From the NCBI GenBank assembly GCA_002794465.1, contig MTSL01000123.1:1-13029 (forward strand): DNA of 13,029 bases, given 5' to 3'. A program made the position numbers and the translations under genes. The stretch comes from Paramicrosporidium saccamoebae KSL3 (Eukaryota > Fungi > Cryptomycota). Below the pieces are notes generated by a model, which saw only the letters and a program-made list of their open reading frames with translations, did no database searches and was not told where the DNA came from. Below are positions 6,825 to 12,961 of this stretch, in pieces (the stretch's first letter is position 1; each line of letters starts with the position of its first letter).

Positions 6825-7901
6825 ATGATGCAACCCACTACAGAGATTTTGGTGACATTTTTGTTGCTGCTTGGATATGTTCAGACCTCTTTGGTGGGGC
6901 AGTCATCTGATACTGATTCTGGCGATGCCGCCGAGACGCTGGAAGAACAGCTCATAAGATACAAGGTTATAAGAGCACCGACCTTGCATCCCGGTTTCAA
7001 GAGCTCCAATATTAAAAGGAAAACACTCAAAGTAGCTAAGAAGCCAGCATCACTTGATAGTGAAGACGCTATACACTATTCACAAAGAATAAGGGATCCA
7101 GAATTGCGCCTTGTTGGCAGTTCTGAATCCGAGTCCAGCTGGGTGTTACTCAGTGAATCAACTGCCGCGCATGAAGCGACTCTTCTCGATGCAAATAAAG
7201 CACCGAGTACCACGCCTGTAACAGTGGTTACAGAGACTACGAATATCGCGAATGTTGCAAATCTCACGGATGGTATCCCATGTCTGAATTTGCAGCGTGT
7301 TGACTCTTCTGATCAAGGATTTGCTCATATAGAGACCAAGGTTAAACAGCCAGTTCCACCGGAACAGCTGACCCAAGAAAAGGTCGATCTAGTGCAGCCA
7401 GCTGATCACCAAACAAGGGATGCTTTGAGCAATCTTGCCCTCCCTTTTAAAGAAAAGGACTACTCGAGTTCCGAAGAATCAAGCATCAGCGAGCCTGTAG
7501 AGGCAGAGGAACCAAGAGAGCCAAGCCCAACAATTTCTCCAAAGAAAAGGTTTATCGATCTGATGGCGTCGCCTTTATATTCTCCGAGAAAGACGTCTGA
7601 GGAGCTTATTCTCCCCAAATTAGTGTATCTAGGATTCTCCGTCCACGATGAAATGCCGAGCAGAGTGACTCTTGGGCCTGCACCGTATGATTCTGCAGAG
7701 GGAGAAAGCTACGTTTTCTTTGGGTCCGTAAACTCTTCCGATTAGCATTATTTAGACTACGATAAGATAAATCAAACCGGTTTAGTTAGGAGTGTGTACA
7801 GAAAGCCAAGAGTCGGTTACATAAGAGTAGTGTCTAGGATCGAATTTCGTGCGAGGGACAATTTGGTCTTTTTGAAAGTGAATGTTACTATTCAATCATA
7901 G
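6825..7901 (+). CDS. Secreted/signal-anchored protein with a low-complexity S/E/P-rich body and a C-terminal discoidin (F5/8 type C, galactose-binding-like) domain interrupted by an in-frame TAG at 7743-7745
   Basis: N-terminal hydrophobic segment EILVTFLLLLGYVQT. After the TAG the same frame stays open for 51 codons (HYLDYDKINQTGLVRSVYRKPRVGYIRVVSRIEFRARDNLVFLKVNVTIQS, TAG 7899-7901, then CCC TTC TGA to 7910). YVFFGSVNSSD*HYL and YRKPRVGYIRVV match the discoidin-like patterns F-x-x-x-GS-x-D-x-x-x-W-x-x-L and F-x-x-P-x-x-x-R-Y-I-R. The domain call is from remembered consensus, not a search. Confidence 0.7.
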
Positions 7902-7964: not shown

Positions 7965-8099
7965 CTAATGAAATGCGCGCGTAATCCATGCGTAGTACAT
8001 TCGCAATATCCGCGTAAACCATGTATAGTACAGGCGCAATGCCCGCATAGCCCATGCGTAGTACAGGCGTATTATTCGTATCATCAATGCGTCGTACAT
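7965..8099 (-). CDS. Putative 44-aa micro-protein of 11-residue repeats: MYDALMIR-IIRLYYAWAMR-ALRLYYTWFTR-ILRMYYAWITR-AFH
   Basis: Changes between units in this frame are synonymous (Arg CGC/CGA, CGA/CGG/CGC; Tyr TAC/TAT) or conservative (I/V/L, M/L). An AT-rich element lies upstream, and C at -1 of the ATG matches most other genes here. It falls below the ORF-track length cutoff. Confidence 0.55.
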   Translation of the reverse strand: MYDALMIRIIRLYYAWAMRALRLYYTWFTRILRMYYAWITRAFH

Positions 8100-8557: not shown

Positions 8558-9177
8558 TCTCTGCGACTGTCGCGGGCTTTTTACTCTGTTTGGCGGACCT
8601 GTGGCAGCGGCTGACGGGGCTACATGGTCTTATGGAGTTGGGGGAGGGCTGATGCTTGCTTTTGTTGCGATACTATGGCATCACCACAAGAGCGAAAGAG
8701 ATTGCCAGAGGCGGAGCGACGAACAACTCGGTGGACTGTGCCCTAATGATTCATGGGACTCCACAACCACCTTTAACCAGGCACTTTCAGAGAGAGTGCT
8801 TTGATGGACTGACATTCAATGACCTGAGGAGCTTTGGAAGGAATGCCGGGCTGCTGCTATTCACAGAGCCCTCCGAAGCTTCTCGGTGTCGAAAATGGTT
8901 TGTGGAATGTGCAGTCATATTAAACCACTACAGCACAGCAAACGGAATGGGACTGGTTGCCATCGTGCAATATGTATGGAAAAAAGCGTCTGGTCAAGTA
9001 GTGCGCTACAGTCTCACGTTCAATGCCTTTCGGCGTCTAAACGATGAGCATCGGGAAACGTTGCGCGAGAGCTTACACAGGGAGTATCCGGACGACCCTG
9101 TACTTTGCAGTTGTAGACAATACTCTTGGAAACCGGTGAATGCTTCAACCGCGCACCGATTCTATAAATCGTTATAG
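8551..9177 (+). pseudogene. Disrupted tandem paralog (A) of the 9560-10462 membrane protein; C-terminal domain frame intact
   Basis: Starts MNISATVAGFLLCL (B: MTVTGFILCL). A 13-bp deletion between TGTTTGG repeats shifts the homologous TM segment into frame 8601-8804. A second deletion of ~160 bp near 8783 returns to the original frame (HFQRECFDGLTFNDLRSFGRNAGLLLFTEPSEASRCRKWFVECA). TGA at 8650-8652 blocks the ATG frame. Confidence 0.7.
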
Positions 9178-9566: not shown

Positions 9567-10462
9567 CCATCGCAGCCGTCTTTACCCTCATAGGCGCCCT
9601 TGTGGCTGGGCTAGTCGCATATATTCTCGGCATCCAATGCATTTATAGTAGACGGCAGGAGTGGATGACTGTTACGGGGTTCATACTCTGTTTGGTGGCG
9701 TTGTTTGGCGGACCCGTGGCAGCGGCCGGTGGAACTGTTTGGTCCTATGGAATTGGGGGAGGACTGGTCTGTTGCCTTCTTGTGCTTTTGTGGAATTGTT
9801 ACAAGAGCGACAAGGACGAACAAGCTGAGATACTGAGACTCGAAACATCGCAGGACCCTTTCCATCAGGCGTTACTGGTTTGCCTTGCTCGGAATCGGCT
9901 CACTTTTTAGGCTGCTGTGAAGCGATATGGAAGGGTCGACTCATCAATTCTCCCCCAACTGTCCATGCCAATGATGCGACGTGTGTATGCAACTCGTTTG
10001 GCTGAAGGCCAGCGGCTGCTGACTTTGGATGACTTTCGCGAAGAATGCTTCTACGACTTGTCCTTCAAGGACACGAGCAACTTTGGAAGGAACGCCGGAA
10101 TGTTGATATTCACAGAGCCTTCCGAGTCTGATCGCTGTCGGAAGTGGTTCGTAGAGTGTGCAATTCTCTTGAGACGCTACAGCACGGCGAAAGATAAGGA
10201 GCTGGTTGATATTGTGCGTTATGTATGGCAGGAGAGCGTGATGAGCCCCGAAGTTTGCTACAAGTTTACATTGGATGCCGTACAACGTTTAAAGGGCAAA
10301 TATAAAGAAATGCTATGCCAAGCCTTGCACGAGAAGCATCCAGACAATCTCTGGCTCAAAACTCATCTGCCCCAGTCTTCAGGCATGGACGAAAATGTAT
10401 TCAGCTCCAATCGTGACCCGCTCCTGGGTCCAGTGGCAAAGACAAAGGTTTCCGGACACTGA
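9560..10462 (+). CDS. Orphan membrane protein (paralog B): ~3 N-terminal hydrophobic segments plus a helical soluble domain; two in-frame ORFs joined across TAG 9908-9910
   Basis: ATG 9560 (MNTIAAVF...) follows the shared promoter. ORF 9917-10462 is in frame immediately after the TAG. A candidate 33-nt phase-0 intron at 9878-9910 (GTTTGC...GCTCACTTTTTAG) gives 289 aa, or the TAG is read through. Homology to 8551-9177 spans both parts. Ends TGA. Confidence 0.8.
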
Positions 10463-10816: not shown

Positions 10817-12961
10817 TCACTTTTTGCGTTTGTCCTCCATCCACTCTTTAAAATATTGATCATTCCGGTTCGGTTGAGTTGGAAGTATTTGACACTCTTC
10901 CCACAACCAATCCAGGACATTGTATTTCCACATATCACTACTTCTCATTGCCGCATTGGCGGCCCCTACTGTGCACGCCAATAATGGCTTGCTTGTGCGT
11001 ATCACCTCCAAAATGTCAACTCTACCTTTTGATGCAGCGAGGCTCACAAGGGCAGTGGTTGCTTGCAATCCTTCCTCAAGCAGCCACTTGAACACTTGCA
11101 AGTGGCCCAGTCGAATAGCATGGTCCATCATGCCTGGTTCAACCTTGGCATTAGCGGCCGCTGATTTGATCTGTTTGAGGGCTTGTAGCATCAACTCATC
11201 GGGTACAGAGCTCAGTGTGTAATAAAACGCTTTCAGACTTGGCCGTTCACCCTTGAGGGGGTGGCTCAGTATCCACTCCATTTCATCCTGATTCTGCTGT
11301 ATGGTAGCGTAGATGAAGCACTCTGTCACGTTGATAAAAGGATATCCAAACACGAACGTTAGTCTGTCGTTTTCGAACGTAAAAACCATGTGCAAAGCGG
11401 CATAATGGCCCATTTCACAAGATTTCTTCACAGAATGATTATCCGGGAGAACTTTGAATTTAGCGTAAACCCAATCGAGGATTTCAGCGTGCCCACACGT
11501 TGCTGCACGATTCGCTATAGTCTGCTTCGAACCATCAGAGATCTCCAGGTCTGCAAGGTTACTCTGCAACTCTTCCTCTTTTCCATCCGCTGCTAATAGC
11601 ACAAGGTTTGTATCACTTGAAAATGCAATTTTGGCATCATCTCGAAGATAATCGATGATTTTACGAGAGTCAGGGCCCACATAAGACTGGCAAATCGCAT
11701 GGTTCCAATCAATCTGATCTTCAAACCTGATTAGTAGCTATTCGATGAACTCTAAGCGTCCTGAATCGATGATTTTGCTCACTTGGTAAATGTTTGGGGG
11801 GACCAACTTTTTCTCCTTTTCTCCATTCCTCCATTTCCCCTTTTCGTACAGCCACGTTGCTACGTCAAGACTGCCTTTATCGATAGCAATGTTGCACAGA
11901 CGCTCATGGTTGAAATCAGGATCTCCCTGGGGTATTTCCTGTAACAGTGCCAGACAGTTATTTCCGGCAAGCCATTCTGTATATTTGGAGTGGACTGTTG
12001 CTATACCATTCTGTAGTCTCAGGCAGCCTTTTGGGATTCGGTCATAGCCAAAATGTAAGAGATATTGAAGCGCTTTAGCCTTCTTTACTGAGTGAGGGGC
12101 AATGCGGCTGGTGTCGAGGTGCAAATTCTGGTTAGAATTAATGATTTGGTCAATGATATGGGGCGGCCCGTATTCCGCCATCAAGTCCACATCCTTTGCA
12201 ATACCCTCAATCATTTCTGAATAGAAGTGATTAAGGATATTGAGTGCATCAAACTTGAGAATTTGTACACGCAATTCGTCTTTTGACAATTCACTTAAAA
12301 ACGGTCGATCACGCATCACCTCGTAGAATTTAATATTGTCGGCCTTGAAGATCATTGGCCAGAATTCATTCCACTGAAATTCCTGTCGACCCGAAATATC
12401 CTCGATAAAGGCTAGAGTTCCACATGTCATGGCCCGGGCCCAGTGCATCTGTGCATCATCTTCCCAAATCGGGTAGTACATGAGAAATTTCGGGACCTCG
12501 TAGTATTTGTGGTCGAGTGCTTGTTGCACAATTGTTTCAACATTAAGCGCAATTGCGGGACAGTCGGACGCTATGAACCCTGCAAAGGTGTAATAATCAG
12601 CAATGTCTGCATTATTTGCTTTTGCAAGCTCCCCAAGCATCTTGAGGGTGAAATCGAGAGATTCGAGATCCAGTTGGCTTCCATGTTTAGCCATTTCGTT
12701 CTGATGTATAAAGAGGTCTTTTCCCGGCTGTATTTTTGAGAGAATCGTGAAAATGTGACCAGCCGGCGTATTGAGATCCAAGCCAGCGCCTAATTCAGCA
12801 AGCGAGCCCAGTTTTGCGCGCTTTTTCGGACGCTCTTCGTCGCTATCAGCAGACCTTTTGCGCTTGTCCGAGCGCTCTTCACCGCTAATAGAAGAGCACT
12901 GAAGCTCTTGAAACCAACTGGCTATGCAGAACGATAGGGAAAGGAGCAGCACAAACTTCAT
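10817..12961 (-). CDS. Large (~706-714 aa) signal-peptide + bipartite-NLS protein with degenerate ankyrin-like repeats; ORFs 11738-12961 and 10817-11680 are one frame split by a single TAG (11740-11738)
   Basis: Signal peptide MKFVLLLSLSFCIASWFQELQCS, then KRKRSADSDEERPKKRAK. Repeats: AIDKGSLDVATWLY, IIDSGRLEFIE*LL, AATCGHAEILDWVY, AIRLGHLQVFKWLL, AASKGRVDILEVIR. The 19 codons between the TAG and the GTG at 11680 are open (LLIRFEDQIDWNHAICQSY). Ends TGA. Confidence 0.85.

Follow-up and report, generated by a model that had tools for sequence, protein, structure and literature searches.

An expanded, mis-annotated family of putative secretory ankyrin proteins in the intranuclear parasite Paramicrosporidium saccamoebae

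Anaplasma AnkA, Ehrlichia Ank200 and the Ank proteins of Orientia are bacterial ankyrin nucleomodulins that leave the bacterium through type I or type IV secretion systems. Paramicrosporidium, which is placed at the transition between Rozellomycota and Microsporidia, grows in the nucleus of its host. In Microsporidia, effectors that combine a signal peptide with a nuclear localization signal (NLS) and reach the host nucleus have been proven, namely EnP1 of Encephalitozoon hellem and NbRBL28 of Nosema bombycis (PMC11348272). In Nematocida, large families of the NemLGF type are clade-specific, rich in signal peptides and host-exposed by proximity labelling, with some members being nuclear, and the corresponding genomic signature identified 85% of experimentally host-exposed proteins (PMC5423893). 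Here we analyse a gene at positions 10817-12961 (minus strand) of contig MTSL01000123.1 from Paramicrosporidium saccamoebae KSL3 (assembly GCA_002794465.1); the window examined is the entire 13,029-base contig, as an exact match of its eIF3j gene showed. An initial annotation had read this locus as a secreted, ankyrin-like effector directed to a host nucleus, a proposal that presupposes an organism that is not free-living, and the literature tied to the assembly describes P. saccamoebae KSL3 as an intranuclear parasite of Saccamoeba. No paper linking Paramicrosporidium to ankyrin proteins, signal peptides or NLSs was found in the literature, and nothing is published on how this parasite manipulates the host nucleus. 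The main result is the recognition that the gene, which is interrupted by an in-frame stop codon, belongs to a hidden, mis-annotated and expanded family of ankyrin proteins in P. saccamoebae that are predicted to be secretory.

The bacterial Ank proteins provide an analogy only, in that, in both cases, an intracellular parasite would secrete an ankyrin scaffold that can reach the host nucleus. Their export by type I or type IV secretion contrasts with the eukaryotic signal peptide predicted here, and no bacterial relative was found by HMMER. The giant viruses Pandoravirus, Mimivirus and Pithovirus resemble the P. saccamoebae family in having degenerate ankyrin units and large paralogous families in the same host niche; however, there are no sequence matches, and the viral proteins in the list of fold matches lack the family-specific N-terminal domain (N domain). 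The likeness to EnP1 and NbRBL28 consists of a related lineage, an N-terminal signal peptide (predicted in the present family), basic NLS-type segments that are partly conserved among relatives and a proposed destination in the host nucleus (PMC11348272). There is no sequence relationship to these effectors, and no such protein was returned by any search. Moreover, EnP1 lacks ankyrin repeats and its import is proven, whereas import of the window protein is a prediction, the copy in question carries a stop codon and the parasite is already intranuclear. The P. saccamoebae family shares three genomic criteria with the NemLGF-type families, having at least 10 homologues in one species, signal peptides (here predicted) and clade restriction (PMC5423893), and its copies diverge fast at the protein level, as do those of NemLGF. 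It differs from them in fold, in family and in its Rozellomycota-grade organism, and its host exposure is a prediction.

The two pieces of the gene, upstream and downstream of the stop codon, were searched separately, and the stop was read as X in our scripts, with no residue placed. A HMMER search with the upstream piece against 1.84 billion representative proteins returned 16 relatives only, comprising 8 P. saccamoebae models (including the gene's own model, PSACC_01731) and 8 Logan/JGI metagenome proteins. Relatives occur in the Logan and JGI samples SRR16214429 and JGI 3300042203. An intact relative of 669 amino acids (aa) is carried by a Logan contig. Word-index protein searches with both pieces were blank within a length window that excludes full-length relatives of ~700 aa, the upstream piece had no identical entry in an exact-match look-up, and two JGI metagenome scans, one with a single protein and one with an alignment of a three-member subfamily, yielded no relative. 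By tblastn and scans for open reading frames (ORFs) in fetched contigs, at least 11 copies were located on 8 contigs of P. saccamoebae. Of these, eight are intact ORFs of 656-719 aa that lack introns; a contig end truncates another, a further copy is divided between two frames, and the remaining one is the window copy. On seven of the eight contigs (MTSL01000123, 096, 073, 165, 122, 166 and 102), family copies lie within 1.5 kb of a contig end, including the copy that is cut. No telomere-type repeats were found at the contig ends of family-bearing contigs. Either the family is located near chromosome ends or it breaks short-read assembly.

The deposited annotation does not reveal these genes. 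At L002, L004, L005, L006, L007, L009, L010 and the window, the deposited family models measure, in ascending order of length, 148, 182, 251, 279, 280, 351, 517 and 865 aa. Those that were checked are fragments or fusions with introns that remove conserved coding sequence, the real genes being single-exon. PSACC_01731 covers only the start of the window gene, and in its final 19 residues it departs from the frame of the sequence that aligns with the paralogues. These fragmentary models (148-865 aa) hide the family; consequently, published proteome-based comparisons of the genome cannot have seen it.

Further family-related sequences accompany the complete copies. In the split copy, L010:3109-4293 (minus strand), which was deposited within a kinesin model of 1384 aa, the signal-peptide part and the repeat part are in different frames, indicating either a frameshift or a real intron. 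A distant sister subfamily is represented by L006:3838-5985 (minus strand), L002:4396-5535 (minus strand) and L003:2354-2845 (plus strand), none of which is modelled correctly in the deposit. Its architecture is alike, with a signal-like N-terminus, a homologous N-domain motif and tryptophan-containing (W-type) ankyrin units, and one member is an intact ORF of 715 aa that adjoins a family gene. Two loci appear to be decayed or partial remnants: L002:97-789 (minus strand) gives a weak tblastn match and contains short ORFs only, and L006:289-852 (plus strand) is an ORF of 187 aa in which a family-type signal peptide is followed by unrelated sequence. The decayed and split copies fit birth-and-death turnover.

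The features of the window gene are as follows.
10817-12961, minus strand: family gene, 714 codons plus a terminal TGA, with an ATG start at 12961, one in-frame stop and no frameshift.
12456-12961, minus strand: deposited model PSACC_01731 (PJF18454.1), 148 aa, one intron.
12896-12961, minus strand: signal-peptide-like N-terminus, residues 1-22, with K2 followed by a hydrophobic core; the motif SWFQELQ[C/G]S is common to two paralogues.
12812-12895, minus strand: two tandem acidic-basic units, residues 23-50, an internal duplication.
12812-12865, minus strand: 'bipartite NLS' of the initial annotation, residues 33-50, a subset of the tandem-unit stretch.
12032-12808, minus strand: family-specific, all-helical N domain, about residues 52-310, conserved across the family.
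10820-12031, minus strand: ankyrin-like region, about residues 311-714, with six W-type units and one that holds the stop, in three groups, and a basic tail.
11809-11845, minus strand: 8-base tandem repeat of 4.6 copies in the coding frame, matching a basic in-frame insertion of ~9 residues.

The initial annotation treated 10817-12961 as one continuous reading frame. No frameshift is present, but an in-frame stop had been overlooked, and the full-length protein envisaged therefore cannot be made from the gene as assembled. The ATG is the first start codon past the upstream stop, and the gene aligns collinearly with the intact 656-719-aa paralogues. The in-frame stop falls within an ankyrin unit, in a column in which all seven intact paralogues that were compared have a sense codon. 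The ~9-residue basic insertion at 11809-11845 is matched by a gap in 7 of 7 paralogues in the alignment. Stop-codon reassignment was ruled out: TAA, TAG and TGA all terminate other genes on these contigs, and the genetic code is thus standard. An intron across the stop was also ruled out, given that no tool predicts one, the intact relatives have neither gap nor intron at this position and the stretch forms part of a repeat unit.

Conservation was compared on the two sides of the stop. The window copy keeps 56 of 62 strongly conserved family residues before the stop and 35 of 44 after it. The ratio of non-synonymous to synonymous substitution rates (dN/dS) is 0.47-0.51 before the stop and 0.53-0.63 after it, and is not clearly higher after, although these and all other dN/dS values below derive from small pairwise comparisons with near-saturated dS (0.8-1.3). 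With one stop, no frameshift, and downstream conservation and dN/dS that are little changed, the break looks recent, if it is neither an artefact nor confined to one of two alleles in a diploid. The best reading of the window copy as assembled is a putative young pseudogene, a null allele of a diploid or a truncated member of the family. Translation up to the stop would yield a secretory protein of ~400 aa in which the signal peptide, basic module, N domain and first ankyrin unit are retained, whereas most of the repeats and the basic tail would be missing.

The signal peptide claimed in the initial annotation is borne out as a signal-like N-terminus. In residues 1-22, K2 precedes a 16-residue uncharged hydrophobic run, and the layout of a positive n-region, a hydrophobic h-region and a polar c-region is found at the true N-terminus. 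The Kyte-Doolittle maximum over 10 residues is 2.76 for the window gene, whereas cytosolic housekeeping proteins from the same contigs reach at most 1.7; the controls, a glycosyltransferase and a tetraspanin, reach ~2.7-2.8. Among the 11 copies surveyed, a signal-like N-terminus was found in all full-length ones (10 of 10), resembling the membrane and secretory controls rather than cytosolic neighbours, and the homologues thus do not lack the feature on which the proposal of secretion depends. No later segment of transmembrane grade is present in the window protein or in other family members, and no ER-retention-type C-terminus (ER, endoplasmic reticulum) was found in the members inspected. 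Cleavage could occur after about residue 14 or about residue 22. The initial annotation placed an NLS immediately after the signal peptide; the order is correct, but 'immediately' is slightly loose, since ~10 residues lie between the hydrophobic core and the first basic cluster.

The signal-peptide codons show a separate peculiarity at the nucleotide level. Between 12896-12961 of the window and the corresponding segments L002:1517-1582 and L006:1443-1508, dS is 0.08-0.26, as against 0.8-1.3 for the rest of the gene. This low dS at the 5' end suggests gene conversion or nucleotide-level constraint.

The basic stretch that follows had been described as a textbook bipartite NLS, KRKR-9x-KKRAK, at about 12865-12812. 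Residues 33-50 read KRKRSADSDEERPKKRAK, map exactly to 12865-12812 and fit both the bipartite rule (two basic residues, a spacer of 10-12 residues, then at least three basic residues in five) and the pattern K[KR]x[KR]. The pattern is real and partly conserved. The module consists of two tandem copies of an acidic-basic unit of ~14 residues, S..S.EER..KRK/R; the bipartite rule is loose and, according to the census of paralogues, only a subfamily of three genes has the NLS-like module. In 5000 shuffles of the window protein, a bipartite match occurred anywhere in 16% and in the first 60 residues in 1.3%, and an equally dense K/R window occurred in 1.1%. The module is predicted to be disordered, with a predicted local distance difference test (pLDDT) score below 50 for residues 14-51 and block means of ~32, and lies between the N-terminal helix and the folded domain.

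The subfamily comprises the window copy, L002 and L006, which share the signal peptide (MK.VL...SWFQELQ) and the module. Two units are present in the window copy and three in L002; in L006 the module is degenerate, keeping KR and RKR and failing both NLS rules. Outside the subfamily, L010a has an unrelated basic stretch after the signal peptide, and the other members have none. The module is 71% identical to that of L002, with 7 of 20 identical residues being encoded by different codons, and its rough Nei-Gojobori dN/dS against L002 is 0.20, the lowest of any segment, over only 28 codons. The corresponding values are 0.34-0.37 for the N domain and 0.47-0.63 for the ankyrin region. This low dN/dS and the peptide identity maintained with different codons suggest that selection constrains the module peptide in two or more copies. 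An NLS function is plausible.

The N domain spans ~250 aa and is helical, with invariant H173 and W174, a W197...W201...D208 pattern and ADN-type positions in the family alignment. Searches of Pfam, NCBIfam, PDB sequences and folds gave no match for it. AlphaFold modelling of the upstream piece with the family alignment gave a pLDDT of 67.6, with 71-94 in the folded parts. A PDB sequence search with this piece produced no match, and Foldseek with its model found no PDB match at E <=0.001, returning generic helical-repeat proteins only. For the downstream piece, AlphaFold run on the single sequence gave a poor model (pLDDT 47.7).

The W-type ankyrin-like repeats reported in the initial annotation were recovered by several approaches. 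Pfam Ank_4 scores 27.5 bits on the downstream piece against a gathering score of 22.7, and Ank_2, Ank_3 and Ank_5 fall just under their cut-offs. Across the family, Ank_4 is detected at E <=0.01 in 7 of 8 members, with a best value of 2.1e-8. Internal repeats in the window protein exceed those in shuffles, six pairs scoring at least 30 against 0.7 expected. A hidden Markov model (HMM) of the gene's own repeats mapped six units and one interrupted unit, in three groups, at positions common to the paralogues, and hhalign matched the repeats of the downstream piece to the end of the upstream one (probability 92%). Each family member has 6-8 detectable repeats, which are degenerate and carry a tryptophan in the second helix. 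The structure models show helix pairs; the units are irregularly spaced and mostly lack the TPLH-type hairpin motif that is usual in ankyrin repeats. In PDB sequence searches, designed ankyrin proteins were matched weakly (E ~1e-3). The C-terminus of the window copy ends in ...EDKRKK, as had been reported.

The two halves of the window copy differ in their closest paralogues. The N half is closest to L002 and L006, with 53-55% identity in the N domain, whereas the C half (10820-12031) is 37-39% identical to L004a, L004b and L007 and 30% identical to L002. This difference hints at mosaic evolution or exchange between paralogues.

Taken together, these observations lead us to propose, with a probability of roughly 0.6, that the locus belongs, as one copy among several, to a lineage-specific family of secreted ankyrin proteins exposed to the host, the copy itself being a young pseudogene, a null allele or a truncated member. 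Intact members would be built, in order, from a signal-like N-terminus, a variable disordered linker, a helical domain of ~250 aa and 6-8 degenerate ankyrin repeats. They would enter the parasite ER by means of the signal peptide and, because the parasite grows inside the host nucleus, would be released into the host nucleoplasm, where the ankyrin units may serve as scaffolds that bind nuclear proteins of the host. The basic units of the subfamily might bind host importin alpha or chromatin, such that the protein is kept in, or returned to, the nucleus. A more specific version, in which the tandem units are working nuclear-retention or chromatin- or importin-binding modules, their number expands and contracts, and the window copy is a segregating null allele, is doubtful.

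Several considerations weigh against the proposal of a host-exposed family with a nuclear module. A parasite that is already in the nucleus has no obvious need of an import signal; the bipartite rule is met by chance in 16% of shuffles; the consensus NLS is kept in only two of three subfamily members, and most of the family has no module; and the dN/dS estimates are subject to near-saturation. The probable death or truncation of the window copy limits its individual importance. In addition, a signal peptide by itself is no proof of host exposure, and the family could be secretory without being delivered to the host, its members being parasite-surface, spore-wall, polar-filament or ER-resident proteins and the module having a role inside the parasite. 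EnP1 was originally described as a spore-wall protein (PMC11348272). The RNA behind the P. saccamoebae annotation came from spores, and the genome paper reports no polar-filament proteins recognisable by sequence, which means that structural roles must fall to some of the fast-evolving secretory families. We nevertheless consider a parasite-internal role unlikely, as the family members have neither an ER-retention-type C-terminus nor a transmembrane anchor. Ankyrin arrays are typical protein-binding scaffolds and not wall or tube components, which also counts against such a role. Moreover, a clade-specific, expanded, signal-peptide-bearing and fast-diverging family matches the Nematocida host-exposed signature (PMC5423893). 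For the basic clusters, a different explanation is that they are dibasic (KR/RR) kexin-type cleavage sites in a pro-region, in which case processing in the secretory pathway of the parasite would cut off the module ahead of release, leaving a mature protein that begins close to the N domain. The module lies directly after the signal-like segment, and each of its tandem units terminates in KR or KRxR/K, which favours such a pro-region; what the three subfamily members have in common is EER plus dibasic pairs rather than bipartite spacing, and L006 retains its KR and RKR while failing both NLS rules. Acidic, serine-rich spacers with PKKR resemble regulated NLSs, however, and one dibasic site of L006 precedes a proline, a residue that is unfavourable for kexins at this position; both points argue against processing. 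Fungal Kex2 is well documented to cleave repeated units at KR, and Kex2-processed repeat proteins (KEPs) similarly have a signal peptide followed by short tandem units ending in KR (PMC6339444). Here, by contrast, only 2-3 units precede a large folded protein of ~650 aa, which is neither an array of small peptides nor the small, mostly repeat precursor that defines a KEP, and we regard cleavage of the module as rather improbable.

The state of the window copy depends in part on the assembly, which was produced by Velvet from short reads and binned out of an amoeba-culture metagenome by tetranucleotide map, coverage and BLAST class and comprises 221 scaffolds. According to the genome paper, P. 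saccamoebae is probably diploid, with reported 50:50 ratios at single-nucleotide polymorphisms. Both circumstances weigh against a broken gene and leave a modest chance that the organism has an intact gene, with the stop being an assembly or base-call error or belonging to one heterozygous haplotype, and that the protein of ~714 aa is made. The lone stop with zero frameshifts over 714 codons, the lack of clear decay in the part downstream of it and the intactness of all remaining complete copies except one point the same way. A consensus base error is, however, unlikely at the reported coverage of ~50-59x with quality-filtered reads. The protein collections searched contain no independent copy, the sole relative above 66% identity being the deposited 148-aa model, and the decayed remnants and the split copy show that members of this family are lost. 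That the bin derives from a metagenome also raises the question of whether the contig comes from the Saccamoeba host or another community member, which would make the protein an ordinary amoebal secretory ankyrin protein. This origin is highly improbable: the guanine-plus-cytosine (GC) content of the window, ~46-47%, fits the parasite bin, and all eight family contigs bear compact, mostly intronless eukaryotic housekeeping genes, as expected for a genome of 7.3 Mb with 47% GC and 76% coding sequence (genome paper). The initial annotation further raised a possible horizontal origin of the repeats, with a giant virus of amoebae or an intracellular bacterium as donor. Such donors share the host niche of the parasite, and the top fold matches of the upstream-piece model in BFVD are giant-virus ankyrin proteins, but these Foldseek matches are non-significant (E >=0.028, template-modelling score <=0.26) and those in the PDB are equally generic. 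The HMMER search with the upstream piece, which includes ankyrin units, returned no viral or bacterial relative, the word search with the downstream piece was blank within its length range, and in composition and paucity of introns the family genes resemble the housekeeping genes around them. The suggestion thus finds no support, and acquisition of the repeats from such a donor is very unlikely.

If the tandem units do work as nuclear-retention or chromatin- or importin-binding modules, the three-gene subfamily would represent the first 'nucleomodulins' described from an intranuclear parasite of Rozellomycota grade and would show how an intranuclear eukaryotic parasite keeps its secreted proteins in the nucleus. 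The family offers candidates for host-exposed proteins, and the copies with zero, two, three or degenerate basic units form a natural series for examining what the NLS-like module does.

The remaining genes of the window are eukaryotic housekeeping genes, encoding a Tpa1-like 2OG-Fe(II) oxygenase, a GDI/REP-like protein and eIF3j. No tRNA or Rfam matches were found in the window, and NCBIfam gave no match for any of its unknown ORFs. The called gene at 6825-7745 (plus strand) encodes 306 aa, with a signal-like N-terminus and a body rich in serine, glutamate and proline; it has no family match, and its product is a further candidate secreted protein. ORFs at 8656-9177 (plus strand) and 9917-10462 (plus strand) are mutual paralogues that share FGRNAG..FTEPSE..RCRKWFVECA and match no known family; the latter is a called gene, and the former is uncalled and has no ATG start. 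A 33-base tandem repeat of 2.8 copies lies at 7978-8069, and an intergenic microsatellite, TCTCTTCA, is present in 10.4 copies at 470-552.

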